Counted from the stretch's first letter, positions 26,634 through 39,484 are shown. The stretch: DNA of 64,000 bases from Phallusia mammillata (GCA_965637545.1 OZ281497.1:19220001-19284000); one strand, 5' to 3'. Translations and numbers: made by a program. Notes: generated from the sequence alone by a model not told the origin.

Positions 26634-29600
26634 CTAAACTGCAGTTGGTATTGGCAGGATACCTTGCAGTTTTTGCCGTACCCTCTCGAGGTAAACGTCT
26701 TTCGTTGTGGCGTGGTTTAACCAAACATTCGCAGATTGAATATTGTCGACTGCTTTTTTGAAGCATTCTAATGTGAGTTTTCTGTCGCCAAGCTCGTTGT
26801 ACACATCGCCAACGCAATCGTAAACGATTCCAGAAAGCGCGCGGGAGTCTTGAATAGTGGAACATTCGTCGGTAATCTGAAGACAGGCATCAGCAGCTTG
26901 TCTTGTTTTAGCTTCGTCGCGTGTAGACTTGCAAACGTGCATGACACTTTTTAGCATGTTGTGGCACGACGCGAGCTTGGTCTGGTTCGCAGCAATATCT
27001 CTGCAGTTGAGCTTCTCCAGAACATTGATCATCAGGGGAAGGACTTCATCCCGAACGTCGTCGTCAAGAAATTCTTTCAGCATGGAATCGGCTAAGTTTC
27101 GGCAAATGGAAGACATACTTCCCACCCAAAACAATCGCGCCGAACTCGCCATCGACAAGAATTCGTAGAGTTTTTTCGACCAAGTAAGAAACTCCACAGC
27201 CATTGGATAGAAGGACCGACCTTGTAAGATTTTTGCGATGCTGATACACTTTATCGTCAAGGGGAATTGGTTTCTAGAAGGCAAGCCTGCTCTTAATTTT
27301 CTGGAAAGATCTTTGCAACAGTCGGTCAGTGGGCCATCTCCCTTTCCCTGTCTATTCAGTTCTTCTATTTTTTCGCACAAATTGATCAGCATATCTTGAA
27401 AAATGTAAAATTAGTTTAAAGAACGTTTTCAAACTTTACATGTTTTTGTAAAGGTAAATAACAATAAGATATGAAAAATATCAAACAATAGGCTAGAATT
27501 AACTTCATTAAATCTGGGTAACAAATTACTTCTCACATTGTTTGATTCATTTACAACGGTGTAAGAATATTAAAAGATGATATCACGAACCAATTGCCTT
27601 TACCCCAACTGCGCGGGTAGAAAAATAAAGCCTACCTAAATGAGCTGCCGGATCCTTAGATGGAGACGGTCCTGGTGAAAATTGCGTAACTGAAGTGCTA
27701 GGTGCTGGTGATTCGAATACAGAAGAATCTGCGTTCAAAAAGGGCATGTTTTAAACTGCTCGATAAATTGTGTCTTTTAGTTTTTTACTTTATTTTTAGA
27801 TTGTAAAACATGGTTAATTGATTTTAAAAAATGAAGAATTAAGTTAAAAATAACCGTGAATAACCGTGTTGGGTATGGAACATTTCTTTTTAAAAAAGAA
27901 AAACTTAACTTTAAAAACATACCAACTTCATTAATAGGTGACAGGTCTTGCTGTAATGTTTCACCGTGTGAGCGTTGAAGGCGAAGTTCTTGACAAATAA
28001 AAGTATTTTTCTTTTTGTGTTTATTGAAGCCAATATTACACGCATGTAGTTCGTTAATTGCACGAAAACTTCTACACAAAAATCAAAATACCTTGGTGAT
28101 TGTAGTTTGCCAGTTCCATAAACGGGGATGCAATGTTATGCAGACCAACCCTTGAAGCGTTAGGTAAAGGCAAACTTTGTTTTCGAGATTGCTGCTTGAA
28201 TTTCATGAGTTTTTTGAACTCGAAATGCAAGCGAGCCCCATTGCAAGTTTTCAAAACGCTTTCAGCTTGTTGCAAAACTAAACAAAACAATGGAAATGTT
28301 ATGAGAAAATATACGAAAACCTCACATCAGGCAAGTGTGCTTAATAACGGTAGATGAAGCATTGGCGGCTATTGGAAAGAAAAAAATTAGTTCATAACCC
28401 TAAAACTGAGTTCTTACCTTATCCCTGGTGCCTTAAGTTGTGTGAACTCACCCATAACATTAGGATCTATCTAAAGATCCTTTGACGTCACAATTCGTCT
28501 CGTTTTGAACATCACGCCATATATTTGAACGGAAGTATAACCTACTGTTTTGGTGTAGCGGTGTTTTTGTGCACAAAAACACGCCTGTAGTCCTTGCTAT
28601 GTCATTTTCATTTTTGCAACACAAGATAGCACTGTTGCGCATGGGTGCATGTGCGACTGGTTGTGAACCTTGGCTGCTAGTTCAATAACCCTATTTACGC
28701 TTAGCAAACTTTGTTTAAATGACTTCTTAAGTTAGTTATTCGACTAATTTTATGACAACCGTGTTGTGAAAATCTTCTTTTCGAAAAAATATCTGAAGTG
28801 TAAAATACGTGTTTAATTAGAAGATCGTTTGGCCATGGCTCTAAAAGGAGTGAAGAACTTAGAAAAACGGTGGCGTTTATGTTTGACTTACGGTTGGCAC
28901 TGGTTGGCCTGTTTCGTGGTTCCGCATCCCAGCACTGGACCATTGTCGATTTTAAGAACTTGAAAACATTTTGAAAGTGCTGCACTTCGGGTTTGTCCTT
29001 CTCCTGTTGGAAAATCTTGATGCTCGGACGCAGATCGCCTCTAAGCATGTTCACGTAAAGTGGCTGTTCCCTGGCGCCTTCGTATACAGGCTGCCTCGTC
29101 ACAATCTCGAAAATTATCATGGAGAAACTGCACAATAAAAAGAAAAACTGACGTAAGGGAAAAATGTATTGCATAGTTTAAAGGTCATTGAGAACACTGT
29201 TGTGGCGTTTATTTATGATTAGTTTTGCATATAATCTTGTGCGAAAATATGTATTTACCATTCTTAAAATACATTTATGCACATAAACAATGTCGTAACA
29301 CATACCTGTACATGTCCATCGCAGCGGTCCTGGCTGATCCATCGGTTTTGCGTAGAAATTCCGGCGCAACGTAGCGAAGTGTGTATTGGCTGGAACAGGT
29401 GATTGACACTGAACCCTCATGCCTCCCGTTTGCGTCCTGAATATTCGCCGATCCAAGGTCAGCGATTTTGATCACAAGGTCGTCAGTAAGAAGTATGTTG
29501 GTCGGTTTCAGGTCTCCGTGGCAAATCACAGTGCCAGTTGCGAAATTGTGCAAATACGCCAAACCCGCTGCTAGCTGCTTTACGAAGCATACACCGATGT

Positions 29601-30428
29601 CAAGCGAGATGTTTTCCATTTTGTCGGAATGCAGAAAATCGTGCAGCGATCCGCCGTTGATGTATTCCATTACTATTGCGATGCTTCCAGTCCAACGGGT
29701 TATCCCAATTATTTTGACGATATTTTCGTGGTACAACTTGCTCAGAATGTTTGCTTCCCTTGAAACACTATTGCAGTACAAACTTAGGTTTAATATTTTT
29801 ATTTTTATTTTATGTAAGTTATATTGACTTTGAAAATATAACTACTTGCAATTAGTGCATAAGCCTTGGCTGGGAATAACTTACAATAAAAATGGTACAC
29901 GATTGGTTATCCATTATCGCCTGCTGTTATGTAGTATTTTCATTTTTTTTAAATATTCAAAAATTCAAAATATTTGCGTCACAAAACGCCATACACGTGT
30001 CTGCTGAAATTTATTAATAAATTGCAAGCGCAAAAAATACAGGCTTTAATATGTAAAAGTGGCTAGTGCTTATACTAGCAACAGCTATATAAATCAGCTA
30101 TGGTTGCGGAAATGCACATCTTTTTAGTTTACACACATATTTGGACAAGTACATTTCTTTAGAAAAATGAACGTAACATTTACAGCTTTATTCAAATTTA
30201 CAAACAAAGCTACCAGTGTATCGACGAGACTTACTTTTTAAGCACCTTTTCCTTCTGGTCTTGGTTATTGGACAAAGCGTAGCATTTCGCAACCACAGTG
30301 TCGTAAACGTCATGGTAACAACGCCGCACGTGACCGTAAGAACCGCAGCCGAGGTAGTCGTAGGTGTCAGGACTGGTGTGAAGGTCTTCAGGCGACAACT
30401 GGGAAATTCTCCGCGAGAAAGCTGTGTG
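26634..30428 (-). CDS. RIPK1-like non-RD Ser/Thr kinase with C-terminal TPR-like helical domain, copy A (5' end unresolved)
   Basis: Exons ~30428-30235, 29758-29306, 29127-28892, 28277-28092, 27728-27636, 27394-26634, in phase. Motifs: YLGCGSYGHV, VVAKCY, EANILSKLYHENIVKIIG, MEYINGGSL, ICHGDLKPTNILL, KIADLG, YVAPE, MVQCWDAEPRNRP. TPR-like end: YDCVGDVYNELGDRKLTLECFKKAVDN. Confidence 0.88.
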
Positions 30429-33264
30429 CTATATAAACGTATTAATTCAAAACGTGCGAAATTCAGTGCAAAATATGCAAAACTGTAGCAACTTGGGCAA
30501 CAAGTAAACATGCATAGCCGACATGCTACACTAATTGCTAAACTGTATAAAATATACAAGTCTTAAAAGTTGCAACCGTCCGAACCCGAAGTTTTCTTTA
30601 GAAAGCTTGAATTAAGCCCAAAAGTTCGGTTTACCAACTTGAATTACGACACAAATTTGCATTTAGCCTCAGTCAAGCCGGTGCTATCAATTAGACCCGA
30701 GCCTGAACTCAAACCCGAACCCGAAAATCCCGACCCAACTTACAACTCGCCTAAAACACATACCACATTCATTAATACCTTTCTAACATTAATCAATACG
30801 TACCTTTTTGAGGTGGCAATGAGCCCTCGTGATATTTGCACTCATTCTTGTTTTGTTTTCATCAGCAATCGCGTCCTGTCAAGAAAAACGGTCACAACAC
30901 AGTTAGTGGCTTTTTGACCAATTTTAAATTAGGTGCCAAGCTATAATTAAAGACGTAGTTTATAGGTTCAAGTGTTAATGAAAACGTAAGTATAAGCGAT
31001 TCTAATGTTTCAGTGGTCGGCCTATGTCCTTGGATTCTCAGTTACGCAACTATATAGCTTACCTGTTAACTGCTACAGTTTCATGTTGTTCCAATTCATG
31101 GTAGGTGTATTTCCATGACAACATTTAACAACAATATTTTTTGCGATCACTATCAAAAAGCAATTCGTCATTTAACGTTTCTATAAACTGATTAACTGAC
31201 CAAGTTACTTTATCAGAATGACAGTCTCGCACAGCAGACCAGCAAACGTAAATTATTAACTTTTTGCAAAGATGGATTTTCCCCTATGGGTGGTTAAACC
31301 CTTGGGTGATTTACCACCCTTTTCCCCATGGGTGGTTAAACCACTAGCCATGTCAGCAACAAGACGCACAGTAGAGATAAAATTTGGGATCGGTTTGCTA
31401 TGAAAGCAATACAGCTATAAAAACACTCTGCACCTTTTGCACACAATTTAAGATAGTCTTGGGCGGTAGAAAACGGGTTAAGCTTGTCTTGCATATTCTG
31501 ATTTTAAACATAACCTACGCTGAACAAAATACCCTGTTTATTTTCGGCTACTAACAAGCAAAAGATAACCTTTTGGGATAACCCGCGAAGATAACTCACA
31601 TCTTTTTAAATCAGTTTTTAGTTCCATTCAGAAAATGTAACACGTCAACATCTTCCATGCAACCTGTAATCGTACTGCCTTATGAAAAGGTTACAATAAA
31701 TCCCACAGGCCACTTGACTGCAGGGAATTCACGCGTCGTTCTTAAATCAGCCAAGCGAACACGTTTTGGATTCGGAGGTTTAGTAATCAACCGAGCGTTT
31801 TCTTCCGTTTACTGCAACAAGTTTCACATGGAAAGTGCTCGAATATTCTGTTTTGCGATTTTGAATAAAAACATAACATGCTAAATCGTTGCAAATGTCA
31901 CGTAACCTGGAAATTACATGCAGTTTAAAATGAACTGTTATCAGTTGTTGTAATACATAGGTTCTGTTTTGTTCTAAGAATGCCAGCTTTGGCTTAAAAC
32001 TACGTTGCATACACTTAAAGAGGCGATTTCTTGTTGAATGCACACGAGCGACGTAACTGCGCGGTGAACAAAACTTGTTAGACGACCTTACTACTGCTCA
32101 TTCAAAACGAACATCGCCAAATTTCGGATAAAAACGCTGGTCAAATCGTTTTCCACGTTCAATTTAGCCTGTCAAATATTTAAGCACTTGTAACGTAAAT
32201 GACCTAATATTCGCACTGACGTCATGAGTAAGAGCGGACGTGACTAGTAAGTTTAACCAGTAACCAACGGTTGGACTATTGCTGTTAGCACAATCAGGAA
32301 GTGCAAGTCGCAAGGACACGCATACCATTTCCTGCACGCTGTGCCCGATGTAATTTCTTTTCAGCTTGCGGATGATTTAACAGGTTTGCACAGAATTGTC
32401 GTAAACCTGACTCAACAGATTTTTGCTAAACCTTTTACGATTTTACTGTTTAAACTACAGGCTACCCAATCTTTCTGAAAGAAAATAAGGGCCAATAACA
32501 GCAAAAAACTTACCTAAACCTACAGTTATCGAAACTACACAACTCTTGGGTTGCTGACGCAAACATGGAACGAAACTGTACACATTCCTGCATGAATTAA
32601 AAATAGAACGAAACTACAGACATTCCAACGCAGTTATAAGCCTAAAACTCGAAAGGCATTTAACTGCCTAAAGGGATGCGTTCAAACCACTATGATGATC
32701 AAAAAGATATCAATATGCCCCTTTAACTGTTAGCAGACAACACGATCTTCGACACGTTTTTAAATAGATGAATACATCCAGTAGATGTAAAGACAGATAA
32801 TATTTATTTTGCCTCAAAGCGGCATCGTCAGTTCCTGTAAAATCACAAAGTTAAACACCATGAGAATAAAACCACATTACGCTGTTGCCTAAAACGTTCA
32901 AACAAAGCAAAGAACTCAGTGGATTTTACAGCTCTGTCTGTTAAAGCTGGTCTGGCGCATAAAATCACATTGACCCGCCAAAATATCTTGCGTTATAAAA
33001 AACGACCACGAAGGCGTCCCAAAGCTAGAGGTATTTTCAGTTATTTAATGCTGATGGGTACATTTCACAATAATGCATCGCTGATCAGTTATTAAACACA
33101 AATGGAAACGCTATTAAGTGCTTGCAAGGTGCCCCCAAAACGACCAATGGTCTTGCATTTTTTTACAATTACGGATATTTCAAGCCGAAGATTTCAAATT
33201 TGGACAAGCACGAAAAGTCAAAGACGTCGTTTAAGTGCAGAACAGTTTGCACCTTACATAAAGC

Positions 33265-36200
33265 TTACAGATGAATAACACTGCTGGTGTGTACAGTGTC
33301 TTCGGTTTCTGGCTCAAACACCTCATCGCCAAGATCCAAATTTTCTATTTTGTCTTGGATCGACGCAATATACTGGTCCTGGTTTTTGGCTGTGTTTGTC
33401 CAGCTGGGCGATGATATGAGGTTGTCCATTGCCTGGCGGTACATGGCAAGCGCTTGTGGGTTATTTTTAAGCTTAAAATACACGTCTCCGATGCAGTCAC
33501 AAAACTGACCTCGCTGAATCTTGTTGGGCTTGACGGGAGACGACATGGTGGTCAGAAGTGTACTCTGGCATATTTTCGCAGCTTCTTTAGCGTGGGTGTA
33601 ATCGTGAATGGAATTACAGACGTGTATAAAGTGTTTCAGTATATTGTGGCACGTGTTGATTTTTTCCGCAGGGTCGATCGTGCCGTTTCTCACTTCGTAC
33701 AACGCACCAACCAACAAGGGTAGTATGTTGTCTCTCACATCGTCGTCCTGAAACTCCTTTCCCATATCGTCAGCGAGATTTCGGCAAGTTGCAGACATCT
33801 TACCGAGGCAGTATTGCTGCTCATTGCTGCCGACTCTCAGCAGTTTGTAAAGGTTAGCGGAGATTTTCAAAAACTCGATGGACAATGAAAACATAGAACG
33901 TGACTTGAGCGAACTCGCGATCTCAATACATTTTATCATAAGAGGAAACTGGTTTCGGGTTGGCAACTTATTCTTCATGCGTTCCAGAATGTTTGTGCAT
34001 TTCCTGTCAACAGTTTCATCATCGACGTTTGCATTGACCATCTCAATAACTTTATCACACGACTTGGTCAGGTGATCAACGAAGCTGCATCCTTTAAAAC
34101 ACAAATAAGAATAAAGCACAAAGATTTTGCGTATGAGGTGAAGCTTAGCTTGATTTCGTGGTACGGTTTAAAACCTTCTCCAACAATTAAGCTCCAAACA
34201 GTTACAAACACAAAACCATGACAAGTGCAAATGCAAATTATTACATACCTTTTTGCAGCGAAGTTGGTTGACGATCTTCTTTGACTGTCGAACTGCCAGG
34301 AACTTGAGTTGATACAGGTAAACGAGGCTTTTCGGTTGACGCAGTAAGAACATCATCTTTATGTGGCGATTCTGTTACTTTCGCCCCAATGAAGTCGCGA
34401 TCGAAATGCGTCAAATCAACAGTAGCGTCATTCGGTAGGTAGGGAAGCGGCTTGCGTCCCAACCGTTTGGACAGCAACTTCCATTCGTGATGTATTTCAA
34501 GACCGTTGCATAACTTTAGATGATCCGTGGCCTGTTTACAAACTGGAAAGAGCGATTATTTAACGACTGTACGTGAATGCCGTAACAATCCCAACGTTAG
34601 TGTTTTCACACACAATAAACACAGATAAGAAATAAAAAACGCGTTTAGTAATCCGGATGAAAAACACGCGTAATTTTAACCATTTAGTAAAAACAATCAG
34701 TCTGCCCAGACGGAACAGGGGGACTAATCATTTGCTGCAATTTTAACTACCACTTTTAATTAAGTAGTTTTAGTGATTCAAAAATGACCTTCTTGTGTGC
34801 GGTCCTTATAAAAACGTTTAGGTTATTTGAAAGTGCAGCCGGAAAAAAATCATCGTACAATATATAGAGACCTACTTTCCTTGCTTGTAGGTCGTTTTTG
34901 AGGATTACAGTCCCAACACTGGGTCATGGTGTGTTTGAGAAACCCCAAAAGGGTTTGATTGTCATGTTGTTTTTCTATTTCATCCAATACATGGATGTCG
35001 GGACGAAGCTTTCCCTCCAGCAAGTTTGTGTAAAGTGGAAGTTGACGGGCACCATGATACACAGGCTTCCTCGTGAATATTTCGTAAATGATCATCGACA
35101 GACTGCACAGATAATAAGTACAAGGGTGGTTTTTAAAATTCTACAAACCAATACTTAAATGAGATTTGTCAAGGATGCTATTGCCATTTGAAATAGTTTT
35201 AATCCATGCAAGCTTGTACAACCAATAAAAATCGTGAAAGAGGGTTATGACAGGACGTATATAAAAGCTGTGTTTAAAAAACTGTTAAATCAAATATAAT
35301 CTTAAACTGGTGCAAGGAAGTTGAACTTTTGCACACGTAAATTTCGGTTCCTTTTATATGTGCGACCCCATAAGCTTTTACCCCAACATGCAAAACCTTG
35401 CGGGTCCTGGAAAAATTACCCTTTTGCTCATGTGGCTTACCATAGGATCTCCCACGCACTGTATAGTCTCGTGAGCTTTGTTCCTGGTGCAAAAGGTTAA
35501 GACAACCGATACTAGGTATACGTTGGTCATGCCGCAAACAATCAGGGTCGGGATATCGAAAGCTTTAAGCGTTTTAGCTAGTGGTTTCACTCAGTGGGAT
35601 ATTATGTACATGCAAAGCGAAATTGTTTATGTCATTGGTGCCTAAATTGTGATTTCAAGTTTTACTATATTCGCTTAAGTGATGAATCTGATTAATTAGT
35701 CACAATGTTAACTATTTTCAATCATATAAAGGCAATTATTTATGACGTAAGACACAAAACATCATCATAAAAATGACAGAGGTAAGCTCGAAAAACTAGG
35801 CATTTGTGATTGACTATAGCTGGAAACTACAACAATTTGTTAGTCATAATCCGCCATAAAATTAGTTAGTCATAAACCCCCTATTATGCCAATATTTTGC
35901 CACAACGTTCAACATTGCGCAGATATTTCCGGGTTGGTGATCGTCCAGTGTGTTATGCTTTGCGTCCTTCCAAGCAAAATCAACTCAACTGAATTCTAAG
36001 TTTCTCCAAAACGGAACTTAAAGCCGTAACAGCGCAAACAACAGGGCGTCAACAACTTTATTGTTTTAACTAAACTTTACTATTAGGTTAATTCTGCATA
36101 CGTATAAAGTTATGTCTTACAAACCTGTATATATCCATAGAAGGAAACCTTGGTCCGTACACGTGTTTCAGAAACTCGGGAGCGACGTGACTAAGCGTGT

Positions 36201-37808
36201 ATTGGCTGGATTCTTGAATCTTGACAGACTTAAACATCACCGAACCTCCTCTGTTTCCTTCTGCGTCGTGAACGTTGGTGGAGCCGAAGTCAGCAAGTTT
36301 CACGACAAATGCCAAAGTCAACAAAACGTTGGACGGCTTAAGATCGCCGTGGCACAGCACAATGTCTTCCTTGTAGCTGTGCAGGTAATCTAGTCCTGAG
36401 GTCAACTGCTGAACGATGCAAAGGCCTAGTTCCAACGACATTTTCGGAATCTTTTCGGAGAAGAGAAATTCGTGCAGTGAGCCACCATCGATGTACTCCA
36501 TAATGATGGCGACATTGTTTTTCCAACTAGTTATTCCGATTATTTTGACAATGTTTTCGTGATACAACCTGCTGAGAATGTTTGCTTCTCTGGAGACACT
36601 AAAGGGCAAATTTAAAGCAATTGGACGTTGCTCTACAAACAGAATCGGTTAAGGCAGGGGCGGGCAACATACGGCCCGCGGGCCGGATCCGGCCCGCGAC
36701 GGGATTGTGAACGGCCCGCAGACAGTTTCTGGTATTACATGATATAACGTGGCCCGCGGCCACAGTCTGCCGAATCCCCCACTACTTGCTTACTACGTCA
36801 AATTATAGTTGTAACAAACAGTAACGCTCCCCAATAACAAAAAAACTTTCCCGCCGTTGTTACCATTGCACCATACATCCATTGTTACGACATAACTGCC
36901 AACCTTGCGTGTGGCCTGCTTTCACGGTTTCCTTTGTTTCCCCACGTGTAGTGTGGTTAGTGTTTCAGCAGTATCTGAGTCTGTGGTGTATGCATTAAAT
37001 TGGCTGTGATGAATAATTTTGTTTGGACTGTATTGTAATTGCGACGTTCTTGATTGTATTTAATTTAGGTGGTCAAAAATCCGTTTTAAATCACTGGATA
37101 AATACGCGATTAATGTATCGATTCACGAATCCGGCCCGCCAAGTACTTCATTTTCCCATATCAGGCCCGCCGACTGGAGAAGTTGCCCGCCCCTGGGTTA
37201 AGGTATACGAAAACCATTAGATTTTAGATCATAAACAAATTTGGCACAAAATAATGTAACTTCGAGTAGAAATATTTTTTAAACAATATTGCAACTGTTG
37301 TGTTTATTTTTTGTATTGTTCGCTCGAAAGGTAAAATAGAATGATTAACGATTAAACGAAACAAGCTTTTACAGCTTGGATATAATTGCCAATTTACATA
37401 CCACGCAGGAGTAAGCAATCACTACAGGCAAGCAGTAACAACGCTGCACACTTGAAAAATCACGTGACCGTGAAATACAAGTAAGCGATTCACTGCCTCC
37501 AGAAATGTTCACAAAGCGTAACAACAACAGTAACAATGGCTATTATGAAAAATTCCTTACTTTTTTAGAACGTTGGCTTGTTGATTTTCATCTCCACTGA
37601 TGTGGTAACACTTGGCAACAACAGTATCGTAGAGTCTGTGATGGCAGCGACGAACATGGCCGAATGCACCACAGCCGAGATAATCGGTTTCATGGGATGT
37701 TGTCTTGAAACTGCTGGCTTCCAGTCGAAACAAATTATTTGAAAAGGCTCGAATTCTTGTCTGTAATGATTGCAAATAAAGGTTTGTTTCATTTGCAACT
37801 ATCTCCAT
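33265..37808 (-). CDS. RIPK1-like non-RD Ser/Thr kinase with C-terminal TPR-like helical domain, copy B
   Basis: Exons 37808-37561 (start uncertain), 36589-36125, 35102-34876, 34542-34249, 34091-33265, in phase. Motifs: YLGCGAFGHV, VVAKCY, LCHGDLKPSNVLL, KLADFG, HVAPE, MTQCWDCNPQKRP. The C-terminal domain is clearly paralogous to copy A. Confidence 0.9.
36655..37195. mobile_element. hAT (Buster/Charlie-like) MITE in intron 1 of kinase copy B
   Basis: TIRs CAGGGGCGGGCAAC and GTTGCCCGCCCCTG, GGCCCGC subterminal repeats, exact TSD GGTTAAGG. Confidence 0.9.
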
Positions 37809-39484
37809 AAATCTACGAGTATTGCTTAATGATCTACCCAGTGGATCTTTAGATTTGTTTGTTTCAACTTTTCTAAGGGCAGCCCGCAATGTTTGTTATT
37901 TAGTCCTCTCTGTCAGTTAAGACTGAAAAAATACCTCTTGTTTTTGTTTGTTGTCCATCGATCGAAAGGCATCCGTCAAACTAGGTTCCAGTCTCTTCAA
38001 AAGCCTTAATTTGGCATCTAGCCTACATACAGTTGAAATCGTACCAGCACTGTGATCCTAAACCGTTTAGCCACATACCACTTTTCTAAAAATATGGACT
38101 ATCATTCCCCGAGCAAAACAAAAGTCGCGTTGTTATAACAGCCGCTTAACACTGGAACTACAAGGCGACCTAAAACATAAAACAACCTATTGGCTTTGAT
38201 TACTTTACCGCAAGCATGCCAAATAGACGTTTCGCTGTGGCAAATCATTAACCAGTTTAATGTTTAATGTTAAGACCAACTAGTTCAACACATAAAATGA
38301 ACCAGTTTGGTCCAAAACTGTGGCACACGGGCCGTACTTTGATATGATTTGGGTCTCACGACCAAATTCAATTAGAACAGCAAATTCAGTCCTTAAATGC
38401 TAAAGAGTCTCCTTTTGTGGCCTACGAAAGACTTACCAAAACCTATAATGTGGCCCCAAACCTTTAAACGAAGCTTGTTCTCTCTTTATAATACAGTGGT
38501 ACCTAATAGACTTGTAGGGTTAACAACTTAAACAGTAACATTGTATGTGTAACATCACGATTTTTTTAGCTTTCTATACGTTGATTTAATCTCGATATTA
38601 TTAAGCTTGTGGCTTGCGCAATTTTAAGCAGCTAAATATCATTGACTAGGGCTAGCCGCTAGGAAATCCAATACCTTTTCTAACGGGACTTTAGTAAACT
38701 TAATACAAATATGCTGGAAAGGGCCTCACCAGTCCATTCAGCCTATTCACAAGTAAACGAACGTAGAATTTGAAGTTCCGCTTGACGGTTTTGAAAGCTG
38801 GCTTTAGCTGGCAGCTCGCATGACTTCATTCAGTTCGTGTGTAGGTGTCTATTCTGGAAATTTTTCTACCATAATCTCCGCTTGTCGTTTAAATTTTAGG
38901 TGCCCCATTTTAAGCAGTCTACCATGCATGCATACTGCAGTACCAGATATGTCAGCAGGTTCAAAGTTTTGGCCTGAGACGGACTTCACCACGCCGTTCA
39001 AGTGACTTGTCCCAAAACTATACTCGCCTTTTGTCGAATACATTTCATTTGCGGACTCTATGCCTGTTTCCATCAGTATAGCCTAAGTATCCTGATATAT
39101 GAGATTTTGATCACAGATCTTCATAATGATGGGAAGCCCATAATTAATTTATCATCAAGTCTATCTCCCTTATTGGCTTATTGCTACCAGATTCAACGCT
39201 AGGTCGTTTTTTGTTTGCATTTTTACTAAATACCAGCAAACGATATAGTTTTCTCACTATACATGTATGACTTATCGCTCTGATGCGTCCCTTGGATGGA
39301 ATGGATGTTTGAAGTACGAAACCAGTGCAGTGAATGAAAATTGTTTGTGATCATATTATTTTGTAAAAAAATGTGGTTGAGCTACTAGCTCCATATACGG
39401 CTGACCCACATTTAGCTAAATTTCGATAAGTGGCGCAAAGAGCTAAATTATTTATTTAGCAGCTGAAGAGGGGTAGGGTTAGGA

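Follow-up and report, generated by a model that had tools for sequence, protein, structure and literature searches.

What kind of protein results when a RIPK-like kinase is followed by a helical domain of unfamiliar type, and how often has one chordate genome used this combination? The question is raised by a locus of Phallusia mammillata. We analysed a stretch of 64,000 nucleotides (the window; GCA_965637545.1, OZ281497.1:19220001-19284000), located at 19.22-19.28 Mb of the chromosome-scale contig C4 in the 240-Mb genome; its DNA is eukaryotic (~38-42% GC, zero N), and positions are counted from its first letter. Two genes, A and B, lie head to tail on the minus strand of the window, and each encodes an N-terminal non-RD kinase, a short linker and a ~255-aa all-helical domain carried by a single last exon. 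We lean towards the interpretation that the products are active non-RD RIPK-like kinases with a solenoid serving as docking or regulatory module, that the family they belong to forms a varied recognition repertoire and that the pair represents an old low-copy branch of it.

Gene structure and transcript evidence

An earlier note on this DNA described two co-oriented paralogues combining a kinase with a helical domain. This layout was recovered in both genes, with the Pfam kinase domain on the middle exons and a C-terminal domain on one exon (Table 1). The linker had been called Ser/Pro-rich; enrichment is present, though only moderate (S+P+T 26-28%).

The proposed fusion of the two parts is confirmed for gene B by a single spliced transcript. 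One RNA contig runs from below 33100 (the 3' untranslated region, UTR, extends beyond this position) across all joints to 36594, thus linking the last exon and the 3' UTR to kinase exon 2, which is covered at 36125-36594. Joints 34091/34249, 34542/34876 and 35102/36125, all with GT..AG ends, are present in RNA contigs of runs X1, X3 and X5 (two studies); a separate contig (run X1 record 4) joins 37935 to 37760, also with GT..AG ends. All B splice joints are absent from DNA run X10. X1, X3 and X5 therefore hold spliced RNA. The exon 1/exon 2 junction has no bridging contig; the donor after 37561 (GTAAGG) is predicted, is strong and agrees in position and phase with gene A.

Joint 37760/37935 sets the start codon at 37958. 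The in-frame ATG at 37808, at which the earlier note had let gene B begin, is therefore intronic, and the start codon falls outside the span that was claimed. The assembled gene B protein has 681 aa; residues 108-681 are identical to a cDNA-derived P. mammillata protein (P0001, GenBank CAB3263626.1), which is 5'-truncated and carries both the kinase and the helical part. This entry is misnamed as ‘CBL-interacting protein kinase 33-like’; the present gene models correct the annotation.

The model of gene A was built by homology, and every junction that it has in common with B has the same phase. Exon 2 of gene A is 61% identical to exon 2 of gene B. The open frame of gene A begins directly after the TAG at the conserved acceptor, 30428.

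The C-terminal domain

The helical domains of A and B are 37% identical over 242 aa (E 2e-59), close to the ~40% estimated by eye in the earlier note, and all motif blocks quoted there are invariant columns of the pairwise alignment. AlphaFold2 modelled the domain as 12 helices (predicted local distance difference test, pLDDT, 77; predicted template modelling score, pTM, 0.73), with antiparallel helical hairpins wound into a right-handed superhelix as in TPR-like repeat proteins. The best Foldseek matches in PDB were the TPR domains of kinesin light chains KLC1/2 (E 2e-4, template modelling (TM) score 0.3-0.4) and the C-terminal solenoid of VPS35 (TM 0.45). An exhaustive aligner (VIA) gave Z 12-16 for designed helical repeats, VPS35 (Z 15.3) and subunits of eIF3; any solenoid would be expected to score about as high. 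Matches in the structure atlas were TPR clusters (TM 0.4-0.5), the language-model neighbours were all TPR proteins, and one relative of the cluster type described below passes the Pfam TPR_1 cut-off (29.6 vs 27.8 bits).

A profile search among 1.84 billion proteins found the query itself, one 120-aa fragment (P0004, run DRR090687) and ~320 TPR proteins that match only positions ~200-235. The C-terminal domain is therefore a generic alpha-solenoid of TPR-like type; it closes with one canonical TPR and otherwise has no described family. The earlier claim of a TPR-like domain that matches no known adaptor fold or described family thus stands after modelling with AlphaFold2 and Foldseek, the Pfam comparison and this search.

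Fragment P0004 is 39% identical to B and sits on a contig that also bears kinase and linker exons. In the B orthologue found on a genomic contig of the same run (L003, 1448-1810), the frame of the solenoid is closed by a TAA once 120 aa have been encoded, and this stop shares bases with a candidate GT donor; the gene has either an additional intron here or lost its end in this copy. The contig ends 500 bp beyond, and the species is probably a related ascidian.

A word search with the solenoid alone gave no match and, being limited by length, was uninformative. With the narrow profile of two sequences, distant copies from this very genome went unfound among the 1.84 billion proteins, so a blank in the protein library does not show rarity. 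The solenoid profile (hmmsearch) found no match in kinases of other tunicates, a set that consists mostly of prokaryote-style open reading frame calls and would miss a separate exon.

The solenoids of A and B have eight invariant cysteines, including a C-H...H-x-C arrangement in one helix (CHNxLKxxxHVC); the cysteine content is 11/276 in B and 12/251 in A.

The kinase domain and its relatives

All expected kinase motifs are present in both genes: GCGSYG, VVAK, HGDLKPTN, DLG and APE in A, and GCGAFG, VVAK, HGDLKPSN, DFG and APE in B. With the full catalytic set intact, both kinases look active. Both are of the non-RD type that the earlier note had read from HGDLKP, having HGD without an arginine before the catalytic aspartate. 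In an alignment of 22 sequences of the clade HGD is the consensus, and its His and Asp are invariant.

The reported lack of the usual RIPK adaptor parts was confirmed as well. The RHIM core tetrad [IV]Q[IVLC]G has no match in the A or B protein. Death domain, CARD and ankyrin gave no Pfam match; P0001 yields kinase families only, and the last exons yield only TPR below threshold.

Among solved structures, residues 1-215 of P0001 (subdomain V to XI) scored best with RIPK1 (58 bits), RIPK3 (56.6), RIPK4 (55.6) and TAK1 (53.4). The profile of the 22-sequence clade gave RIPK1 197/190, JAK1 196, RIPK2 178, TYK2 177, RIPK4 171, IRAK4 155 and TAK1 <148.

A maximum likelihood tree of the kinases groups gene A with B and L003, the Logan genomic contig of run DRR090687 from another species, as (A,(B,L003)) (100/99), L003 being sister to B (97/83). 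The next branch outwards is the tandem pair at C2:25.66 Mb (96/86); beyond it come six further Phallusia kinases with introns (100/96) and then a group of Clavelina kinases (one named ‘RIPK2-like’ at NCBI) with kinases from ENA assemblies (97/93). A large Phallusia cluster on C2 is outermost (99/94). The clade so formed excludes Drosophila TAK1, insect Tube/IRAK-like kinases and plant Raf-like kinases. The tree thus assigns the window kinases to a tunicate-only clade. Vertebrate RIPKs were not included in it; ‘RIPK-like’ should therefore be taken as nearest similarity, not as clade membership.

A family of well over 100 predicted units

A first search of the genome returned only 2 copies, a count overturned by broader profiles. 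Exon 2 of the B kinase has at least 150 genome matches among the matches listed (286 candidates), many of them in tandem arrays. The nearest paralogues (C2:25.66 Mb) likewise carry a helical domain on one exon at their end, and hhalign aligned this domain to the A/B profile with 89.6% probability (E 1.9e-6). Once these two sequences were added, the profile reached the cluster copies (E 1e-7). With an eight-sequence profile (A3), the number of solenoid matches rose to at least 141. Most of them lie at C2:0.7-5.3 Mb, C1:33-36 Mb and C1:6.0-6.2 Mb; a few of the 141 are fragments of one exon.

At 21 of 21 C2 loci examined, one solenoid exon lies 2-6 kb downstream of a kinase open frame, with both on the same strand; outside chromosome C2 the pairing was derived from match coordinates only. 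By these counts, the genome holds well over 100 predicted kinase-solenoid units. The two paralogues of the earlier note are real as a pair, but they are not the whole family. Its lineage restriction, also claimed there, is supported by the tunicate-only clade in the tree, the profile searches and the expansion in the genome. We found no paper describing this family in the literature on ascidian kinase expansion.

The window pair belongs to the expansion, having a kinase of the same clade (99/94) and a homologous solenoid on a single last exon. It differs from the cluster type in its three-exon kinase, conserved intron positions and short linker, and the solenoids of the two types are only 17-19% identical. 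In the branch of A and B, spliced copies whose solenoids are closely related number only four. In all likelihood, the pair is an old, low-copy, intron-bearing branch of the family, with a B orthologue in another species. Tandem repeats were looked for in one cluster-type linker region, and none were found.

Other close paralogues of the kinase precede different sequences, either Kelch repeats or a DUF294 nucleotidyltransferase with TPR_12, and one follows exons of a GBP-type GTPase. Kelch-repeat exons follow a same-clade kinase at C8:12920000-12929999 (L009 of genome G000), and same-clade kinases precede Kelch exons in intronless tandem copies on ENA contig ERZ25067590 (L004). Given this pairing at both loci, the clade's kinase seems to have been combined with several kinds of repeat domains. 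At C7:3988000-3997999 of the same genome (L013, plus strand), a same-clade kinase has downstream of it a region of acidic repeats, an exon resembling a DUF294 nucleotidyltransferase (E 3e-10) and an open frame of 479 aa rich in TPR_12 (E 1e-12); together these may make up a putative single gene. At C4:24684000-24693999 (L008, also G000, minus strand), GBP GTPase exons (Pfam GBP, E 9e-10 and 2e-5) are located directly upstream of a same-clade kinase on the same strand, within an array of at least eight such kinases (C4:24.69-24.83 Mb); this could be a GBP-kinase fusion or a neighbouring gene pair.

Rates of change and variation

Between A and B, the kinase is 60% identical, the linker 29% and the solenoid 36%. 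Nonsynonymous divergence (dN) is 0.32 in the kinase and 0.66 in the solenoid; synonymous divergence (dS) is saturated (proportion of synonymous differences, pS, >0.8), and the ratio dN/dS (omega) was thus not computable for this pair. Among 21 cluster paralogues, median omega was 0.27 in the kinase vs 0.66 in the solenoid, with the solenoid value higher in 208 of 208 usable pairs. In windows of 20 codons, several solenoid windows reached a ratio of nonsynonymous to synonymous proportions (pN/pS) of 1.0-1.5, and no reliably covered kinase window exceeded 0.86. By these rates, constraint is weaker on the solenoid than on the kinase.

The A/B duplication is old, and both copies have been kept: synonymous sites are saturated, and B groups with its orthologue from another species to the exclusion of A. 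As L003 is sister to B, the duplication predates that species split. The earlier description of the family as fast-evolving therefore needs division: per-domain omega upholds a solenoid looser than the kinase, while the remark that identity is low ‘despite adjacency’ is misleading for a pair of this age.

DNA run X10 comes from a different individual. In B exon 3 (34932-34967) it departs from the reference at 6 sites in 36 bp, five nonsynonymous and one synonymous, all within 13 codons. In the solenoid exon of B (33787-33917) it differs at 7 sites, four nonsynonymous and three synonymous; six of these seven are at about half depth, which is consistent with a divergent allele.

Proposed function and alternative explanations

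Under the interpretation towards which we lean, each protein would be a cytoplasmic, catalytically competent non-RD Ser/Thr kinase of the TKL group, its nearest solved relatives being RIPK1, RIPK2 and RIPK4. A flexible linker would join the kinase to a solenoid of about six helical hairpins, the last of them a canonical TPR. The solenoid would serve as a protein or peptide docking module in place of the death domain, CARD, RHIM or ankyrin repeats of vertebrate RIPKs, and may either recruit the kinase to a partner or keep it inactive until a ligand binds. Since non-RD kinases usually need no priming of the activation loop, the output would be phosphorylation without this step. The size and diversity of the family would fit a varied recognition repertoire, in innate immunity or in another self/non-self or stress system. 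Binding of a ligand or partner, regulation of the kinase through its solenoid, and a role as sensor or in immunity are what we infer.

A number of results weigh against this interpretation. Pfam TPR models score only 13-15 bits on the window solenoids, below their cut-offs of 27-30, and only the last hairpin is recognisable as a TPR. In the cluster, dS of the solenoid is 0.235 vs 0.485 for the kinase; being about half as large, it could mean that the raised omega of the solenoid comes from gene conversion rather than from diversifying selection. The affinity to RIPK is a ranking of scores: JAK1 ties RIPK1 on the clade profile, and with exon 2 of B alone JAK (67 bits) and TAK1 (59) lead RIPK1 (51). 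Accordingly, the label ‘RIPK1-like’ of the earlier note holds to the extent that no solved structure scores higher than RIPK1 with the clade profile; it fails in that the RHIM and death domain defining RIPK1 are absent, JAK1 is nearly equal, and TAK1 comes close to or above RIPK1 for pieces of the kinase. As for expression, the share of gene A in the RNA runs that hold B is 0.17 in one and 0.00 in the rest, and it is the splice joints that confirm X1, X3 and X5 as RNA.

Both genes might instead be ordinary developmental or housekeeping kinases whose TPR-like tail anchors them to a fixed conserved partner, in the manner of plant BSKs or of kinesin light chain binding its cargo, with no role in recognition or immunity. 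We consider this unlikely, but a possibility with substance. In its favour, two copies of old origin have stayed conserved, an orthologue of B exists in another species, and kinase dN is 0.32 at saturated dS; the A/B branch with its four spliced copies is small, and the 8 runs from 2 studies in which gene B is expressed may well be embryonic material. Still, more than 100 copies in tandem arrays together with a looser solenoid would be unusual for a fixed interaction, and non-RD kinases are enriched in innate immune signalling.

A bolder proposal is that ascidians, without RIPK1-type adaptors, built more than 100 intracellular receptor-kinases from a RIPK-like kinase and a variable TPR sensor for innate immunity or self/non-self recognition, the window pair being the ancient founding branch. 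We hold it to be rather unlikely. If true, the family would be a chordate counterpart of the plant receptor-like cytoplasmic kinases and NLR arrays.

That gene A, as a duplicate, has fallen silent or is decaying, leaving B as the one working gene, seems improbable to us. Near-absence of A from the runs that hold B would agree with this, as would the lack of any gene A protein in the profile search of the 1.84-billion-protein library and of an ATG-bearing 5' exon, which a DNA similarity search did not locate. All six predicted exons are open, however, with splice phases conserved and catalytic motifs intact, and a kinase still 60% identical to B at saturated dS would have required long purifying selection.

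That the main action of the solenoid is in cis, through autoinhibitory fold-back or the docking of Hsp70/Hsp90, and that it does not sense an external ligand, we regard as quite improbable. C-terminal TPRs do regulate their own kinase in BSKs and PknG, B has an acidic tail, and its linker is long enough to fold back. One canonical TPR would nevertheless have to do the work of the three-TPR carboxylate clamp of Hsp-binding domains, and the patches with pN/pS >1 in cluster paralogues would be left unexplained.

It is scarcely conceivable that the kinase and the helical domain are two separate adjacent genes merged by eye, a reading for which only the intervening intron speaks, and which is refuted for B by single RNA contigs spanning kinase exon 2 to the last exon in three runs and by the deposited protein that has both parts.

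The interest of the locus lies mainly in the size and lineage restriction of the family. A tunicate-only RIPK-like clade of more than 100 copies with a private TPR-like domain would show another way of coupling recognition to a kinase in a chordate, and its members are candidates for ascidian innate immunity or allorecognition.

Coordinates of the features

The features of the window are collected in Table 1. Intron 1 of gene B contains a high-copy insert that plays no part in the protein. In a DNA run, the word depth of this 553-bp element was 40,000-220,000 vs ~45-69 in the single-copy flanks; it is a miniature inverted-repeat transposable element (MITE) of very high copy number, possibly of piggyBac type. 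ARAGORN found no tRNA-like part in it.

Table 1. Exons of genes A and B and the insert in B intron 1 (window positions)
Feature	Position	Strand	Content	Evidence
Gene B exon 0	37935..38102	-	5' UTR and first 8 codons, ATG 37958-37956; may reach further 5'	RNA joint
Gene B exon 1	37561..37760	-	Kinase N-lobe, Gly-loop GCGAFG, VVAK lysine	Acceptor 37760 from RNA; donor predicted
Gene B exon 2	36125..36598	-	Kinase core, C-helix to activation segment (HGDLKPSN, DFG, APE)	Pfam Pkinase E 8e-25; RNA
Gene B exon 3	34876..35102	-	Kinase C-lobe	RNA joints 35102/36125 and 34542/34876 in three runs; identical in P0001
Gene B exon 4	34249..34542	-	Kinase end and linker (~98 aa), S+P+T 26%	RNA joints 34542/34876 and 34091/34249
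Gene B exon 5	33265..34091	-	Whole TPR-like alpha-solenoid, acidic tail, stop 33265-33267	RNA; AlphaFold2; Foldseek/VIA
Gene A exon 1 (predicted)	30235..30428	-	Kinase N-lobe, GCGSYG, VVAK	Acceptor homologous to B 37760; donor GTAAGT, phase as B
Gene A exon 2 (predicted)	29306..29767	-	Kinase core (HGDLKPTN, DLG, APE)	Pfam Pkinase E 4e-30; junctions match B
Gene A exon 3 (predicted)	28892..29127	-	Kinase C-lobe	Junctions concordant with RNA-proven ones of B
Gene A exon 4 (predicted)	28092..28277	-	Kinase end and linker	Acceptor 28277 parallels B 34542; donor 28092 or 28146, both in frame
Gene A exon 5 (predicted)	27636..27728	-	Ser/Pro-rich linker mini-exon	In-frame AG/GT pair joining exon 4 to last exon; from sequence only
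Gene A exon 6	26634..27394	-	TPR-like alpha-solenoid and stop	37% identical to B domain, E 2e-59; acceptor 27394 phase 1 as B
MITE-like element	36649..37201 (553 bp)	.	Insert in B intron 1	20-nt terminal inverted repeats TTAAGGCAGGGGCGGGCAAC and complement, flanking TTAA

Comparison with known systems

RIPK1 and RIPK2 of vertebrates are non-RD kinases, and RIPK1 has a DLG motif, as does gene A. They are among the best-scoring solved kinases for the clade profile and for the C-lobe of B, and they have the same layout of N-terminal kinase, intermediate linker and C-terminal interaction domain. The window genes differ from them in having no RHIM, death domain or CARD, and the similarity is low (~58 bits over 200 aa). 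Because these domains are absent, identity is low and a survey found no RIPK1 homologues (kinase with RHIM and death domain) in tunicates (PMC12119088), the window genes are not orthologues of RIPK1 or RIPK2.

RIPK4, which is among the top structure matches, and ANKK1 (RIPK5) come close in having a RIPK-type kinase followed by C-terminal helical repeats. Their repeats are ankyrin, however, for which the window genes have no Pfam signal, and they are single-copy vertebrate genes that have not been expanded.

The same order of kinase and C-terminal TPR is found in plant BSKs (RLCK-XII) and in mycobacterial PknG, where the TPR part regulates the kinase and docks partners; the analogy is functional only. 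The kinases come from unrelated lineages: in the tree, sequences of plant Raf-like and MAPKKK type stand outside the tunicate clade. No homology of the TPR parts was detected, and the resemblance is convergent.

For the C-terminal domain itself, the best structural matches are the TPR domain of kinesin light chain and the solenoid of VPS35. Given TM scores of only 0.3-0.47, identity of 9-17% and equally high scores for designed helical repeats, this likeness of the modelled domain reflects a common fold class and no kinship of families.

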